In this document: positions 6,064-17,307 of the stretch, in pieces | Layout: every line of letters begins with the position of its first letter | How positions within the stretch are numbered: position 1 is the first letter of the stretch | Sequence record: OR532817.1 | Length of the DNA: 64,000 nucleotides | Direction: 5' to 3' (one strand) | Translations under genes and position numbers: made by a program | Notes under the pieces: generated by a model | The model's input: the letters and a program-made list of their open reading frames with translations, nothing else | Databases searched by the model: none | What the model was told of the DNA's origin: nothing

Positions 6064-9990
<3,927 letters not shown>

Positions 9991-13610: not shown

Positions 13611-13934
13611 ATGTGTACTGAAGCAAGAAGATATGTTTATATTTTGGTTCGCAAAGATTTAGAACTAAAGGATATTATTGTTCAAACTGCTCATGCTTCA
13701 TATGAAAGTGCAAAAGAATTTAAAAATAATGCTGATAGAACATCTATTATAGTTTTAGAAGTCAAGGACTTATACAAACTAAATGATGCTAAAAGTTATT
13801 TAAATTCTAATGGCATTAATTGGACTGTGTATACTGAAAAATCTTTAGGATTTGGAGAAACTGCTATCAGTACTGAAGCACTCAATAACGAACAACGCAA
13901 AACTATGCGTAAGTTCCAATTATTGAAAATATAA
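13611..13934 (+). CDS. second PTH2-superfamily protein
   Basis: YILVRKDL..IIVQTAHASYE, IIVLEV, G.GETAIST, C-terminal FQLL. Confidence 0.7.
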   Translation: MCTEARRYVYILVRKDLELKDIIVQTAHASYESAKEFKNNADRTSIIVLEVKDLYKLNDAKSYLNSNGINWTVYTEKSLGFGETAISTEALNNEQRKTMRKFQLLKI

Positions 13935-15709: not shown

Positions 15710-15858
15710 TACCATACAATATGGGAATAGTTAGAAGATATTCCCAATTTTAATTTAAAAAAGTGTTGAACAAAAAGTTCAATAATGATATAATGGTATT
15801 ATAAAAGGTTGTAATACTTAATATTAACTTTTAAGAAGATAATTAGTTATCATACACA

Positions 15859-15950
<92 letters not shown>

Positions 15951-16008
15951 TAAAATTCAATTAAAAAAGTGTTGAACAAAAAGTTCAATGCTGATATAAT
16001 AAAAGAAT

Positions 16009-16107: not shown

Positions 16108-16157
16108 GGATAGTTATAAAGTTGAATTAACAGCGACACTTAAAATTGTCACTATCC
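16108..16157 (+). ncRNA. 50-nt D-armless tRNA-like RNA, copy 3
   Basis: GGATAGT/ACTATCC; GTTG-AATTAA-CAGC; GACA-CTTAAAAT-TGTC. Confidence 0.7.
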
Positions 16158-16217
16158 AAATTTTAATTTAAATAGTACTTGACAAAAATGTTCAGTACTG
16201 ATACAATAAAGAATATT

Positions 16218-16528
16218 GGCCCCTTAGCTCACGCTTTGGTTAGAGCAGACGACTCATCGATAAATGGTGACTTTCACAAGTAATTGTGATTGAAAAACTG
16301 GATGAATTCAGGGAAACCTTAACACATAATGGTGATGGCAATCCTGAGCCAAGCCCAATAAGCGTATTGGGAAGGTGCAGAGACTAGGTGGTTCAGCACG
16401 ATCTTGCTGTGTAATACACCAATAGCGTCCGGCATCCTTATAGGATGATGATATAGTCCTTTCTATAATGAAAATTATAGGTAAAAAGAATCGTTTGGTA
16501 CTGTGTTCGACTCACAGAGGGGCCACCA
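16218..16528 (+). tRNA. tRNA-Ile2(CAU), intron-containing (exons 16218..16257 and 16489..16528)
   Basis: Joined exons give GGCCCCTTAGCTC...GACGA-CTCATAA-TCGTT...AGGGGCCACCA, closely resembling E. coli ileX. Confidence 0.9.
16258..16488 (+). mobile_element. group I intron (IC3-like), 231 nt, no ORF
   Basis: Core AATTCAGGGAAAC, AATCCTGAGCCAA, GTGCAGAGACT, GATATAGTCC; 5' exon ends in U, intron ends in G; GUGA can pair with exon UCAU giving the U.G splice-site wobble. Confidence 0.92.
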
Positions 16529-16532
16529 CACA

Positions 16533-16606
16533 TTGTACTCTTCTCCCGTAAGGAGAATGACAAAAAGCTATCCGAAAGATAGAAAGCCTGAATTAACAGG
16601 GTGCAA
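16533..16606 (+). ncRNA. candidate 74-nt four-way-junction RNA
   Basis: TTGTAC/GTGCAA closing; TTCTCC/GGAGAA, CTATC/GATAG and CCTG-AATTAA-CAGG hairpins. Confidence 0.55.
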
Positions 16607-16618
16607 TTAAAATACATT

Positions 16619-16693
16619 GGTTCGTTGGCCTATTGGTCGGCCAGCAAACTGTTAATTTGCCTCAAACTAGTTCAATTCTAGTACGAACCGCCA
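16619..16693 (+). tRNA. tRNA-Asn(GUU)
   Basis: GGTTCGT/ACGAACC, GCAAA-CTGTTAA-TTTGC, encoded CCA. Confidence 0.9.
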
Positions 16694-16737: not shown

Positions 16738-17307
16738 ATGTTATTAAAGGACTACATTTTCATGGGAAGAAAACAATCAGAAGAAACAAAAAATAGAATT
16801 TCACAAGCTTTAAAAAATAAATCAATATCTCTTCCAGTCGAAGAAGTTATTGAAAAATATAAAAGTGGAATATCTATTGTAAAATTATCACAGTACTATA
16901 AATGCAGTAAGTCAAAAATAAGTTCTATACTAAACGATAATAATATAAAATCAAATAGAATTTTAAATAAGAACAAGTTATGTGATAAACATAACATTGA
17001 ACATATACAACAACCAAATGGCAAATGGGTATGTTCACAATGTAATACTGAAAGAGTTTCTGAAAGACGTAGACAATTAAAAATCTTGGCAGTAGAATAT
17101 AAAGGTGGATGTTGTGAAAAATGTGGATATAATAAATGCATAGCTGCGTTAGAATTTCATCACTTAGATCCTTCACAAAAAGATTTTTCTATTAGTAAAG
17201 AAGGAGTCACTCGTTCTTTTGATAAAATTAAAACAGAACTTGATAAATGTATTATGGTTTGTGCTAATTGTCATCGTGAAATTCATGATGATGAAAGAAA
17301 AGAATAA
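16738..17307 (+). CDS. HNH homing endonuclease with N-terminal NUMOD3-like/HTH segment
   Basis: RKQSEETKNRIS; CEKCG...LEFHHLDP...CANCHREIH. Confidence 0.85.
   Translation: MLLKDYIFMGRKQSEETKNRISQALKNKSISLPVEEVIEKYKSGISIVKLSQYYKCSKSKISSILNDNNIKSNRILNKNKLCDKHNIEHIQQPNGKWVCSQCNTERVSERRRQLKILAVEYKGGCCEKCGYNKCIAALEFHHLDPSQKDFSISKEGVTRSFDKIKTELDKCIMVCANCHREIHDDERKE

Follow-up and report, generated by a model that had tools for sequence, protein, structure and literature searches.

A putative group I intron in the anticodon loop of an ileX-like tRNA(CAU) gene of jumbo phages, and its relatives in phages and bacteria

Do phages carry group I introns in their tRNA genes, and if so, to which kind of ribozyme do these introns belong and how did they reach their site? 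This question is raised by positions 16218-16528 of a 64-kb stretch of sequence record OR532817.1, from a RaK2-like Klebsiella jumbo phage (the whole stretch, with a G+C content of 31%, is called the window here). A review from 2014 stated that all phage introns then known were located in protein-coding genes and that none had been found in a tRNA gene despite the many tRNA genes of phages (PMC3984707), which agrees with the remark in an earlier note on this DNA that phage group I introns are known mostly from protein genes. Judged from its sequence, the segment is very probably an ileX-like phage tRNA(CAU) gene, most likely coding for a lysidine-dependent decoder of AUA codons, which is split between tRNA positions 36 and 37 by a group I intron of 231 nucleotides (nt) without an open reading frame (ORF).

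In a search with the Rfam model RF00028 (group I intron; gathering score 50), a single match was obtained in the whole window, located on the + strand at 16232-16480, with a score of 104.1 bits (E 6.4e-26) and spanning the full model from position 1 to 253. The locus reads GGCCCC...GACGACTCAT / CGATAAATGGTGAC ... GGTAAAAAG / AATCGTTTGG...GGGGCCACCA, where the slashes mark the splice sites, and the 231-nt intron is preceded by GGCCCCTTAGCTCACGCTTTGGTTAGAGCAGACGACTCAT and followed by AATCGTTTGGTACTGTGTTCGACTCACAGAGGGGCCACCA. When joining of the exons was tried at every combination of an upstream T and a downstream G around the intron core, a tRNA was obtained from one choice only, namely 16257/16488, with splicing after T16257 and after G16488. 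The product, with the anticodon CAT, comprises 77 nt plus CCA and contains the anticodon loop CUCAUAA, and its cloverleaf was identified as the minimum-free-energy structure of the joined exons (-29.6 kcal/mol, z -2.97). The intron is positioned in the anticodon loop right after CAU. Four further phage variants and at least 10 bacterial ones also conserve the U-1.G pair, the terminal G and the loop CTCATAA after joining.

The gene is not revealed by standard tools. With default settings, ARAGORN called six tRNAs in the window and missed both the split gene and the spliced product; the latter was rejected because its D loop comprises 12 nt, and it was recovered with the setting -ps90 or once one base of the D loop was deleted. 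The intron mode of ARAGORN, when applied to the locus, did not find the split gene. Over the region 16150-16600, the identity is 100% with Klebsiella phage RCIP0023 and 98.9-99.8% with KP13-7, Muenster and phiKp_21, and in the records of these four phages the split tRNA stretch carries no annotation at all. The earlier note had placed a group I intron directly after CAU in a phage tRNA gene, with these coordinates, a length of 231 nt, a U.G pair at the splice site and a terminal G. It had also proposed a search with RF00028, and had predicted that excision restores the loop CTCATAA in an ileX-like tRNA and that standard scans would miss the gene; all of this was borne out by the analysis.

For the intron, helices P1 to P9 were derived from the sequence and scored on an alignment of 44 sequences, consisting of the phage tRNA variants, a bacterial relative, the introns of phage terL (terminase large-subunit) and psbA genes, and 35 members from IMG/VR. 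Standard pairs were present in 88.8% of the cells, versus 33-42% when the 3' partners were slid by 1-3 columns. In 49 of the 68 pairs, changes on both sides were found among the 44 relatives. The covariation score was 0.448; slid controls gave no more than 0.097 and shuffles no more than 0.149, and none of 500 shuffles reached the observed value. Support was obtained for every helix, P7.1/P7.1a included (Table 1), and the segment GATGATATAGTC in the region of J8/7 and the 3' strand of P7 was invariant in all 44 sequences. P1 is a short helix with the guide sequence GUGA and the pair U36.G10 at the 5' splice site, a pair which is UG in 28 of 37 counted rows; the same logic of pairing CAU with GUG is known from the Azoarcus intron (PMC2709566). 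In the variant of OU509535, a compensatory change from C1-G9 to G1-C7 was identified in P1, and the Turkey5 variant has two compensatory changes in P7.1/P7.1a. Among the phage variants alone (n=4), compensatory changes are distributed over the P1 extension, P2, P5, P7.1, P7.1a, P8 and P9, a pattern that, as read from the alignment, is characteristic of selection for a functional ribozyme. The exon anticodon stem (GACGA/UCGUU) probably serves to align the exons, as in other pre-tRNA introns. Independently of any subgroup, the traits of a group I intron are present at the locus: a model score above the threshold, the U.G pair of P1 together with the omega-G, and a P3-P8 pseudoknot core with P7.

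Table 1. Coordinates of the split tRNA(CAU) gene, of the predicted intron helices and of adjacent or related features; positions refer to the window unless a locus is named
Feature	Position	Strand	Evidence or description
Sigma-70-type promoter TTGACA-17-TACAAT, TG extended -10	16179-16207	+	Ends 10 nt before the 5' end of the tRNA
5' exon	16218-16257	+	Acceptor 5' strand GGCCCCT, D arm, anticodon stem 5' strand GACGA, CUCAU (positions 32-36)
Group I intron, 231 nt, ending in omega-G at 16488	16258-16488	+	Rfam 104.1 bits, covariation
3' exon	16489-16528	+	A37 A38, anticodon stem 3' strand UCGUU, then the rest of the tRNA: variable loop, T arm, acceptor 3' strand, discriminator A, encoded CCA
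P1	16254-16270	+	Exon UCAU and intron CG paired with intron UG and GUGA; read from the sequence
P2 hairpin UCACAA-GUAA-UUGUGA, GNRA loop	16274-16289	+	Double changes in 6 of 6 pairs; compensatory in Turkey5
P3 5' strand CUGGAUG	16298-16304	+	Pairs with 16426-16432; 99% paired, U-A/C-G covariation
P4 (16308-16313 with 16342-16347) around P5/P5a (16317-16338)	16308-16347	+	P5 C-G to U-A in Turkey5
P6/P6a hairpin	16348-16376	+	P6a with double changes in 7 of 7 pairs, 98% paired
P7 5' strand G(A)GACUA, bulged A	16380-16386	+	With 16454-16459 (UAGUCC), forms the guanosine-binding helix; 99% paired; string same as in the Azoarcus reference row
P7.1/P7.1a hairpin, 34 nt, between P7 and P3'	16387-16420	+	Double changes in 9 of 9 pairs
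P3 3' strand CGUCCGG	16426-16432	+	Covariation alignment
P8 (16433-16447), J8/7 AUGAUA (16448-16453), P7 3' strand (16454-16459)	16433-16459	+	Covariation alignment
P9 hairpin CUAUAAU-GAAA-AUUAUAG, GNRA loop	16463-16480	+	Double changes in all pairs
tRNA-Asn(GUU)	16619-16693	+	ARAGORN; upstream of the HNH gene at 16762-17307
Free-standing HNH endonuclease gene, N-terminal NUMOD3 motif	16762-17307	+	phrog_2255, E 2e-31
phrog_14913-type HNH genes and CBB_420	L002 1569-2373; L006 2505-3532; L275 1098-1605		Downstream of tRNA(CAU)

The identity of the tRNA was assigned by comparison to Escherichia coli. In a BLAST search against 5,426 complete E. coli genomes, the best match of the spliced sequence was a tRNA-Ile feature in all 5,426. 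This feature of 76 nt is matched over its full length with 82.9% identity and, in the example inspected, adjoins mug, which is the position of ileX. A global alignment to E. coli ileX gave 84% identity, with the acceptor stem (GGCCCCT) and the D stem being identical. The spliced tRNA contains the pairs C4:G69, C5:G68 and C29:G41, which we take, from work on E. coli, to be determinants for the lysidine-forming enzyme TilS. The other tRNAs called in the window by ARAGORN read UUA, GGA, AGA, AGY, UCA and AAY, and AUA represents 1.69% of the codons and 20% of the Ile codons in 61 long ORFs of the window; a tRNA-Ile2 decoding AUA fits both the other phage tRNAs and this use of AUA.

The promoter listed in Table 1 is the best promoter-like site between 15500 and 17500, with 11 of 12 positions plus the TG. 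Near-identical TG-extended sigma-70-type promoters of the pattern TTGAAC/TTGACA-17-TATAAT/TACAAT were identified at 15766-15794, 15972-16000 and 16179-16207, the first two preceding tRNA-Ser genes. With one such promoter ahead of every gene in this run of three tRNA genes, separate transcription of the three tRNAs by the host RNA polymerase is suggested.

The structural class of the intron was assigned differently from the earlier note, which had described an IC3-type core. Four classical types of bacterial tRNA introns were defined by Williams (2020), Leu.3Ug, Arg.5Ug, fMet.2Ug and Ile2.5Ug, all of them IC3, and the insertion site in the phage gene is, as had been noted, the one of the Azoarcus tRNA-Ile intron, which is the Ile2.5Ug site (Williams 2020; PMC2709566). 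In the five of five IC3 rows of the Williams alignment, Azoarcus included, P7 (GAGACUA) leads straight into P3' with no insert. The phage intron, by contrast, contains the covarying 34-nt P7.1/P7.1a hairpin at this place, and P7.1 and P7.2 belong to the class-defining peripheral elements of group I introns (PMC3984707). An extra P7.1 pairing, with P7.1a or P7.2, between P7 and P3' is a trait of subgroup IA, and the hairpin of the window intron is common to the terL and psbA introns. Of the IC3 traits, the location in a tRNA anticodon loop is present, while the lack of a helix between P7 and P3' is not. J3/4 (GAAUU), P3' (AGCGUCCGG) and J8/7 (AUGAUAUAGUCC) match the non-classical rows of Williams (2020) that bear P7.1, namely Lys.2Ug, Asn.4Ug, Phe.2Ug and Leu.1Ug.

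The same relationship was obtained from pairwise local alignments, in which each intron was scored against the window intron. The highest score, 186, was that of intron 2 of a Vibrio phage terL gene, followed by a bacterial relative at the same site, L185 (134), and by intron 2 of a cyanophage psbA gene (132); Staphylococcus phage introns scored 89-104 and IC3 references 32-72, with Azoarcus (32) among the most distant. A full-length alignment of the window intron was obtained with the terL and psbA introns, in which compensatory changes in P7.1 are also present. A phylogeny against bacterial tRNA introns, proposed in the earlier note, gave a divided result. In the free maximum-likelihood (ML) tree, the jumbo-phage tRNA introns (support 94/96), the bacterial tRNA(CAU) introns (99/97) and the classical IC3 introns (99/96) form separate clades. 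Approximately unbiased (AU) tests, however, rejected neither a clade of phage and IC3 introns (p 0.67) nor one of phage and bacterial CAU introns (p 0.23), and the tree constrained to phage plus IC3 had a higher likelihood than the free tree. Use of the ML tree as an exclusion of IC3 ancestry was dropped for this reason, so that the case against IC3 is based on structure and pairwise similarity only. On its structure and its nearest relatives, the intron is assigned not to IC3 but to a P7.1-bearing class typical of phages. The impression of an IC3 core is understandable, since strings of the P4-P7 core are common to the window and to IC3 introns.

Relatives of the intron are rare in cellular genomes. 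The core pattern of the family was found in 2 of about 185,000 species genomes versus 54 viral contigs of IMG/VR. One of the two genome matches, L185, is a metagenome-assembled genome of the Gammaproteobacteria in which the intron follows the CAU of a tRNA(CAU) gene; this gene is located a short way downstream of dnaG-rpoD, which is the neighbourhood of ileX. In metagenomes, a search for CTCAT spaced correctly from the core gave 17 matches, all of which are tRNA(CAU) genes split at the same site; 14 of the 17 are of gammaproteobacterial type, and those with enough flank adjoin rpoD. These same-site loci of the sister clade (L185 4368-5140, L192, L193, L199, L187, L188, L191, L194-L198 and L200-L202) indicate, therefore, that a sister lineage occupies the same site in bacterial chromosomes. 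None of the 54 IMG/VR contigs with the family core has it in a tRNA anticodon loop. In at least 8 of these contigs, an intron of the family splits a tmRNA (transfer-messenger RNA) gene in the T loop, a location known for tmRNA introns from bacteria (PMC11915505). Based on their sequences, the introns of phage terminase and psbA genes, phage tRNA(CAU), gammaproteobacterial ileX and tmRNA genes on viral contigs are assigned to the same ribozyme family.

Some further observations were made on these relatives. The viral contigs with a split tmRNA are L131, L140 (for example 7788-8036), L141, L151, L158, L163, L165 and L180. Their introns are flanked by GGGTT on one side and CGAGTCCC on the other, and the joined exons are called as tmRNAs by ARAGORN, with tags such as ANMETLGLLKGSEVAVA*. 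T-arm flanks split in the same way are present in L132-L135, L139, L142, L145, L148, L160, L162, L167, L172, L173, L179 and L183. In the Vibrio phages vB_VpaM_R16F (L007) and 1.193.O (L008), the terminase large-subunit gene is split by four and three group I introns, respectively; the introns are unannotated, and the terminases are annotated as five and four separate coding sequences.

Among phages, the split gene was identified in seven GenBank records, RCIP0023, KP13-7, Muenster, phiKp_21, OU509535, TH47 and Turkey5, and it is missed by tRNA finders and depositor annotations in all seven. A metagenome contig, L190, adds a fourth exon variant. In this RaK2-like contig (about 2435-2745), the T loop of the spliced tRNA(CAU), GGCAGAA, is non-canonical, and ARAGORN does not recognise the tRNA; this allele may be degenerate. 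Intron-minus alleles, for which a survey had been suggested, were found at the same slot in K64-1, RaK2 and 121Q. In K64-1 and RaK2, the intron-less gene is preceded by the same promoter sequence, and in 121Q it is located between tRNA-Ser and tRNA-Asn. Because intron-less alleles occupy the same slot, the distribution indicates that the intron is or was mobile. In the four phage tRNA(CAU) alleles, the introns are 87-94% identical and the exons 62-87%; between the window and OU509535, the values are 91% for the intron and 62% for the exons, and between the window and L190, 94% and 69%. The introns are far more alike than the exons, and therefore either the intron moved between divergent tRNA(CAU) alleles or the exons were swapped around the intron. 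From this pattern, the intron is regarded as a selfish element that has moved through divergent tRNA(CAU) alleles in jumbo phages of the RaK2-like and 121Q-like types. The spread could have occurred via homing by a trans-acting endonuclease, via co-conversion with neighbouring endonuclease cassettes, or via plain recombination in mixed infections. An initial scan of viral contigs with the pattern CTCAT-N(5-12)-GTGACTTTCA was too loose and was discarded, since it gave 119 chance matches, 0 of which had a group I core.

Candidates for such endonucleases are present beside the tRNA(CAU) slot, where three unrelated free-standing HNH genes were found in different phages. An HNH gene of the phrog_14913 type lies directly 3' of tRNA(CAU), at a distance of 20-30 nt, both in the intron-bearing phages Turkey5 and TH47 and in the intron-less phages K64-1 and RaK2. 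In the GenBank phage set, full-length relatives of this type were identified only in these four phages, all directly 3' of tRNA(CAU). Half-length relatives, corresponding to the N-terminal HNH part, are present in CBB and in Yersinia jumbo phages; in CBB, this is CBB_420, a shorter HNH gene directly 3' of tRNA-Met(CAT) which matches the N-terminal half. No relatives of the Turkey5-type HNH were found in IMG/VR, and the window phage is devoid of this type. In OU509535, an HNH_3 type is located beside the slot.

The HNH gene of the window, which belongs to the phrog_2255 type, is located downstream of tRNA-Asn(GUU). (This tRNA fell below the gathering threshold in a whole-window Rfam tRNA scan, while its orthologue in 121Q scored 54 bits.) For 71 viral loci of homologues, a tRNA was found within 400 nt in 52 and a tRNA-Asn in 38, and a group I core was present in 0 of the 71. 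HNH genes 42-46% identical to it adjoin the intron-bearing ileX in four bacterial loci; several viral homologues are closer to the window HNH than these bacterial proteins. Among the ileX-intron loci, a 120-aa (amino acid) HNH gene between rpoD and the tRNA is present in L185, L192, L193 and L199 only, and judged by gene position this presence/absence pattern is as expected of a homing endonuclease gene. On account of these bacterial neighbours, the HNH at 16762-17307 had been considered as the homing partner of the intron; it was rejected as unsupported, with tRNA-Asn close by in 38 of its 71 viral loci and a group I core in none of them. It is probably a resident of the tRNA cluster aimed at the tRNA-Asn region, and in this sense a candidate homing endonuclease. 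The phrog_14913 type appears to be the better candidate for an endonuclease directed at tRNA(CAU), because its full-length relatives occur only directly 3' of this gene. Since HNH genes flank the tRNA(CAU) slot, the earlier proposal that the intron blocks a homing-nuclease site is plausible.

Several observations weigh against an intact split tRNA-Ile2 gene. The 12-nt D loop (ACGCTTTGGTTA, window 16230-16243) is atypical, and it led default ARAGORN to reject the spliced tRNA (in the Turkey5 allele, the D loop comprises 10 nt). Positions 15:48 hold the odd combination C15 and A48, versus G15 and C48 in E. coli ileX. A canonical P10 was sought by eye, and none was consistent across the variants. 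No intron-encoded endonuclease was found, as the + strand of the 231-nt intron has no ORF of 40 aa or more, and the nearest HNH belongs to the tRNA-Asn-tied family and appears not to be linked to the intron. The Ile2 identity is based on similarity to ileX and on presumed TilS determinants, and the OU509535 allele has A4:U69. The odd D loop and the lack of a clear P10, together with the missing annotation and the phages that manage without an intron, might point to a decaying relic, in which a tRNA pseudogene is interrupted by an intron no longer able to splice. This is very improbable, however, with all core elements intact, differences between variants falling as compensatory pairs, U-1, its pairing G and the omega-G kept in all variants, a near-consensus promoter upstream, and the locus kept at 98.9-100% identity in four phage isolates. 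The exons might also belong to an elongator tRNA-Met, in which case the intron would split a Met tRNA: ARAGORN and depositors label CAU tRNAs as Met, the anticodon alone does not reveal the isotype, and the exon alleles are diverse. Such an identity is considered quite unlikely, given the full-length match to a tRNA-Ile in every E. coli genome at the mug-adjoining locus, the acceptor and D stems shared with ileX, the three pairs presumed to be read by TilS, and a phage in which AUA is common and other tRNAs read A/T-rich codons (UUA, GGA, AGA, UCA). A third possibility concerns the origin of the intron: an Azoarcus-type IC3 intron from a bacterial tRNA-Ile2 gene could have gained P7.1 later, and would then be IC3 by ancestry and not by its present structure. 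The same gene type and site, the P4-P6-P7 core strings CAAUCCUGAGCCAAG and GGUGCAGAGACUA common to IC3 rows, GNRA loops in L2 and L9, a similarly compact size and the AU test, with its higher likelihood for the constrained tree, are in favour of this origin. It is nevertheless regarded as unlikely, as the hairpin that is lacking in five of five IC3 references is conserved and covarying here and is common to phage terL and psbA introns, J3/4 and J8/7 follow the P7.1-bearing class, the score of Azoarcus (32) is far below 186 and 134, and the free ML tree places IC3 in a clade of its own.

A different view would be that the intron is kept as a protection, either by breaking an HNH site in tRNA(CAU), in collaborative or defensive homing, or by hiding the anticodon loop from anticodon nucleases; competing jumbo phages would then carry HNH homing endonucleases that target tRNA(CAU) genes. 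The three unrelated HNH genes directly beside the slot in related phages, the phrog_14913-type gene directly 3' of tRNA(CAU) with the intron in Turkey5 and TH47 and without it in RaK2, K64-1 and CBB, and the HNH adjoining the intron-bearing ileX in L185 and in three (L192, L193 and L199) of the metagenome loci that have enough flank are consistent with this view. However, the tRNA next to the same HNH has no intron in K64-1, RaK2 and CBB, and the window HNH family is associated with tRNA-Asn, with a group I core in none of its loci. Hiding the loop would protect little, as the mature tRNA is exposed to anticodon nucleases after splicing. Protection as the reason for keeping the intron is doubtful. 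Somewhat less probable still is a contest among jumbo phages over tRNA(CAU), in which the HNHs of the slot would cut the intron-less tRNA-Ile2 genes of co-infecting phages, and perhaps host ileX, while the ORF-less intron would immunise its carrier and be copied into the cut allele.

For the preferred reading, a split tRNA-Ile2 gene with a functional intron, the following sequence of events is proposed. The gene would be transcribed by host RNA polymerase from the near-consensus sigma-70 promoter 10 nt upstream, and the intron would fold into P1-P9 with the additional P7.1/P7.1a hairpin. The guide GUGA would pair with the exon UCAU, placing U36.G at the splice site, and exogenous guanosine would attack after U36. 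The freed 3'-OH of U36 would then attack after the omega-G at 16488, by which CUCAU would be joined to AAUCG and the 7-nt anticodon loop restored. In the product, host TilS would convert C34 to lysidine, enabling the tRNA to read AUA. The sequence, the intron boundaries, the fold with its compensatory changes, the relatives and the patchy distribution are results of the analysis. We infer the splicing activity, the lysidine modification and the route of mobility (homing aided by a free-standing HNH, or recombination during co-infection) from sequence comparison.

The phage intron can be compared to several known systems. With the intron of the Azoarcus pre-tRNA-Ile(CAU), it shares the kind of gene, the insertion after U36 of CAU, the GUG guide core that pairs with CAU and includes a U.G pair, the compact ORF-less form, the GNRA loops on P2 and P9, and strings of the P4-P7 core. 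The Azoarcus intron differs in its bacterial host, in the absence of P7.1/P7.1a, in J3/4 and J8/7, and in its low score (32) and its separate clade in the free tree, although the AU test does not reject a joining of the two. The introns of phage protein genes (Vibrio terL, S-CBWM1 psbA intron 2 and Staphylococcus Twortvirinae) belong to the same ribozyme family, can be aligned over the full length, have a P7.1 with compensatory changes and the invariant GAUGAUAUAGUC, and are the closest sequences outside a tRNA setting; these introns, however, split mRNAs, whereas the window intron splits an anticodon loop and has a guide matched to the anticodon. In the Staphylococcus phage introns, separate P7.1 and P7.2 hairpins are present instead of P7.1/P7.1a. 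The bacterial P7.1-bearing tRNA introns resemble the phage intron in their anticodon-loop setting, the P7.1 hairpin, the P3' sequence AGCGYCC and the J8/7 sequence AUGAKAUAGUCC. The gammaproteobacterial tRNA(CAU) introns have the identical insertion site, but they are chromosomal, about 70% identical to the window intron, and form a clade of their own (99/97). The T-loop introns of tmRNA genes (Williams; PMC11915505) also split the gene of a structured tRNA-like RNA, but in the T loop instead of the anticodon loop and in a tmRNA gene.

Free-standing homing endonucleases occur in the tRNA regions of phages, T4 SegB being an example, and in cyanophage psbA and the DNA polymerase genes of T7-like phages, an ORF-less intron undergoes collaborative homing with a free-standing endonuclease encoded nearby. 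The jumbo phages resemble these systems in having HNH genes next to the tRNA(CAU) slot, and both intron-bearing and intron-less alleles among related phages. They differ in that the window HNH appears to be tied to tRNA-Asn.

Two other features were identified in the vicinity of the split gene. The 90-nt spacer from the 3' end of tRNA-Ile2 to tRNA-Asn (16529-16618) contains two small hairpins, CTCTTCTCCCGTAAGGAGAATGA and GCTATCCGAAAGATAGAAAGC, and is conserved in 121Q, K64-1, OU509535 and L190 irrespective of differences in the adjacent genes. A function as processing signal or as small RNA is conceivable. Between tRNA-Leu and tRNA-Gly, an ORF of 107 aa (13611-13934, + strand) matches the Pfam family PTH2 (peptidyl-tRNA hydrolase) with E 6e-6 and 26.9 bits (cut-off 23); it is annotated as 'hypothetical' in RCIP0023.

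The classical mechanism and the insertion site are already known. The novelty lies in the host genome, which is that of a phage, in the structural class found at the site, and in the connection between the intron pools of phages and bacteria. The survey of Williams (2020) covered bacterial and archaeal genomes only, and full-text searches revealed no account of a phage tRNA gene with a group I intron; most subscription journals were outside this coverage, and an earlier report is possible. The locus fills the gap named by the 2014 review and links phage and bacterial intron pools. As the gene escapes tRNA finders and depositor annotation in seven GenBank phage records, the AUA-decoding capacity of jumbo phages of Klebsiella and E. 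coli that are candidates for therapy has been under-counted. Related phages with and without the intron and with different HNH neighbours represent a natural system for the spread of an intron that lacks an endonuclease. If the proposed contest is true, it would be a case of collaborative homing on a tRNA gene, shuttling between phage genomes and bacterial ileX loci; and if the intron splices as proposed, decoding of AUA by these phages would depend on a GTP-dependent ribozyme step.

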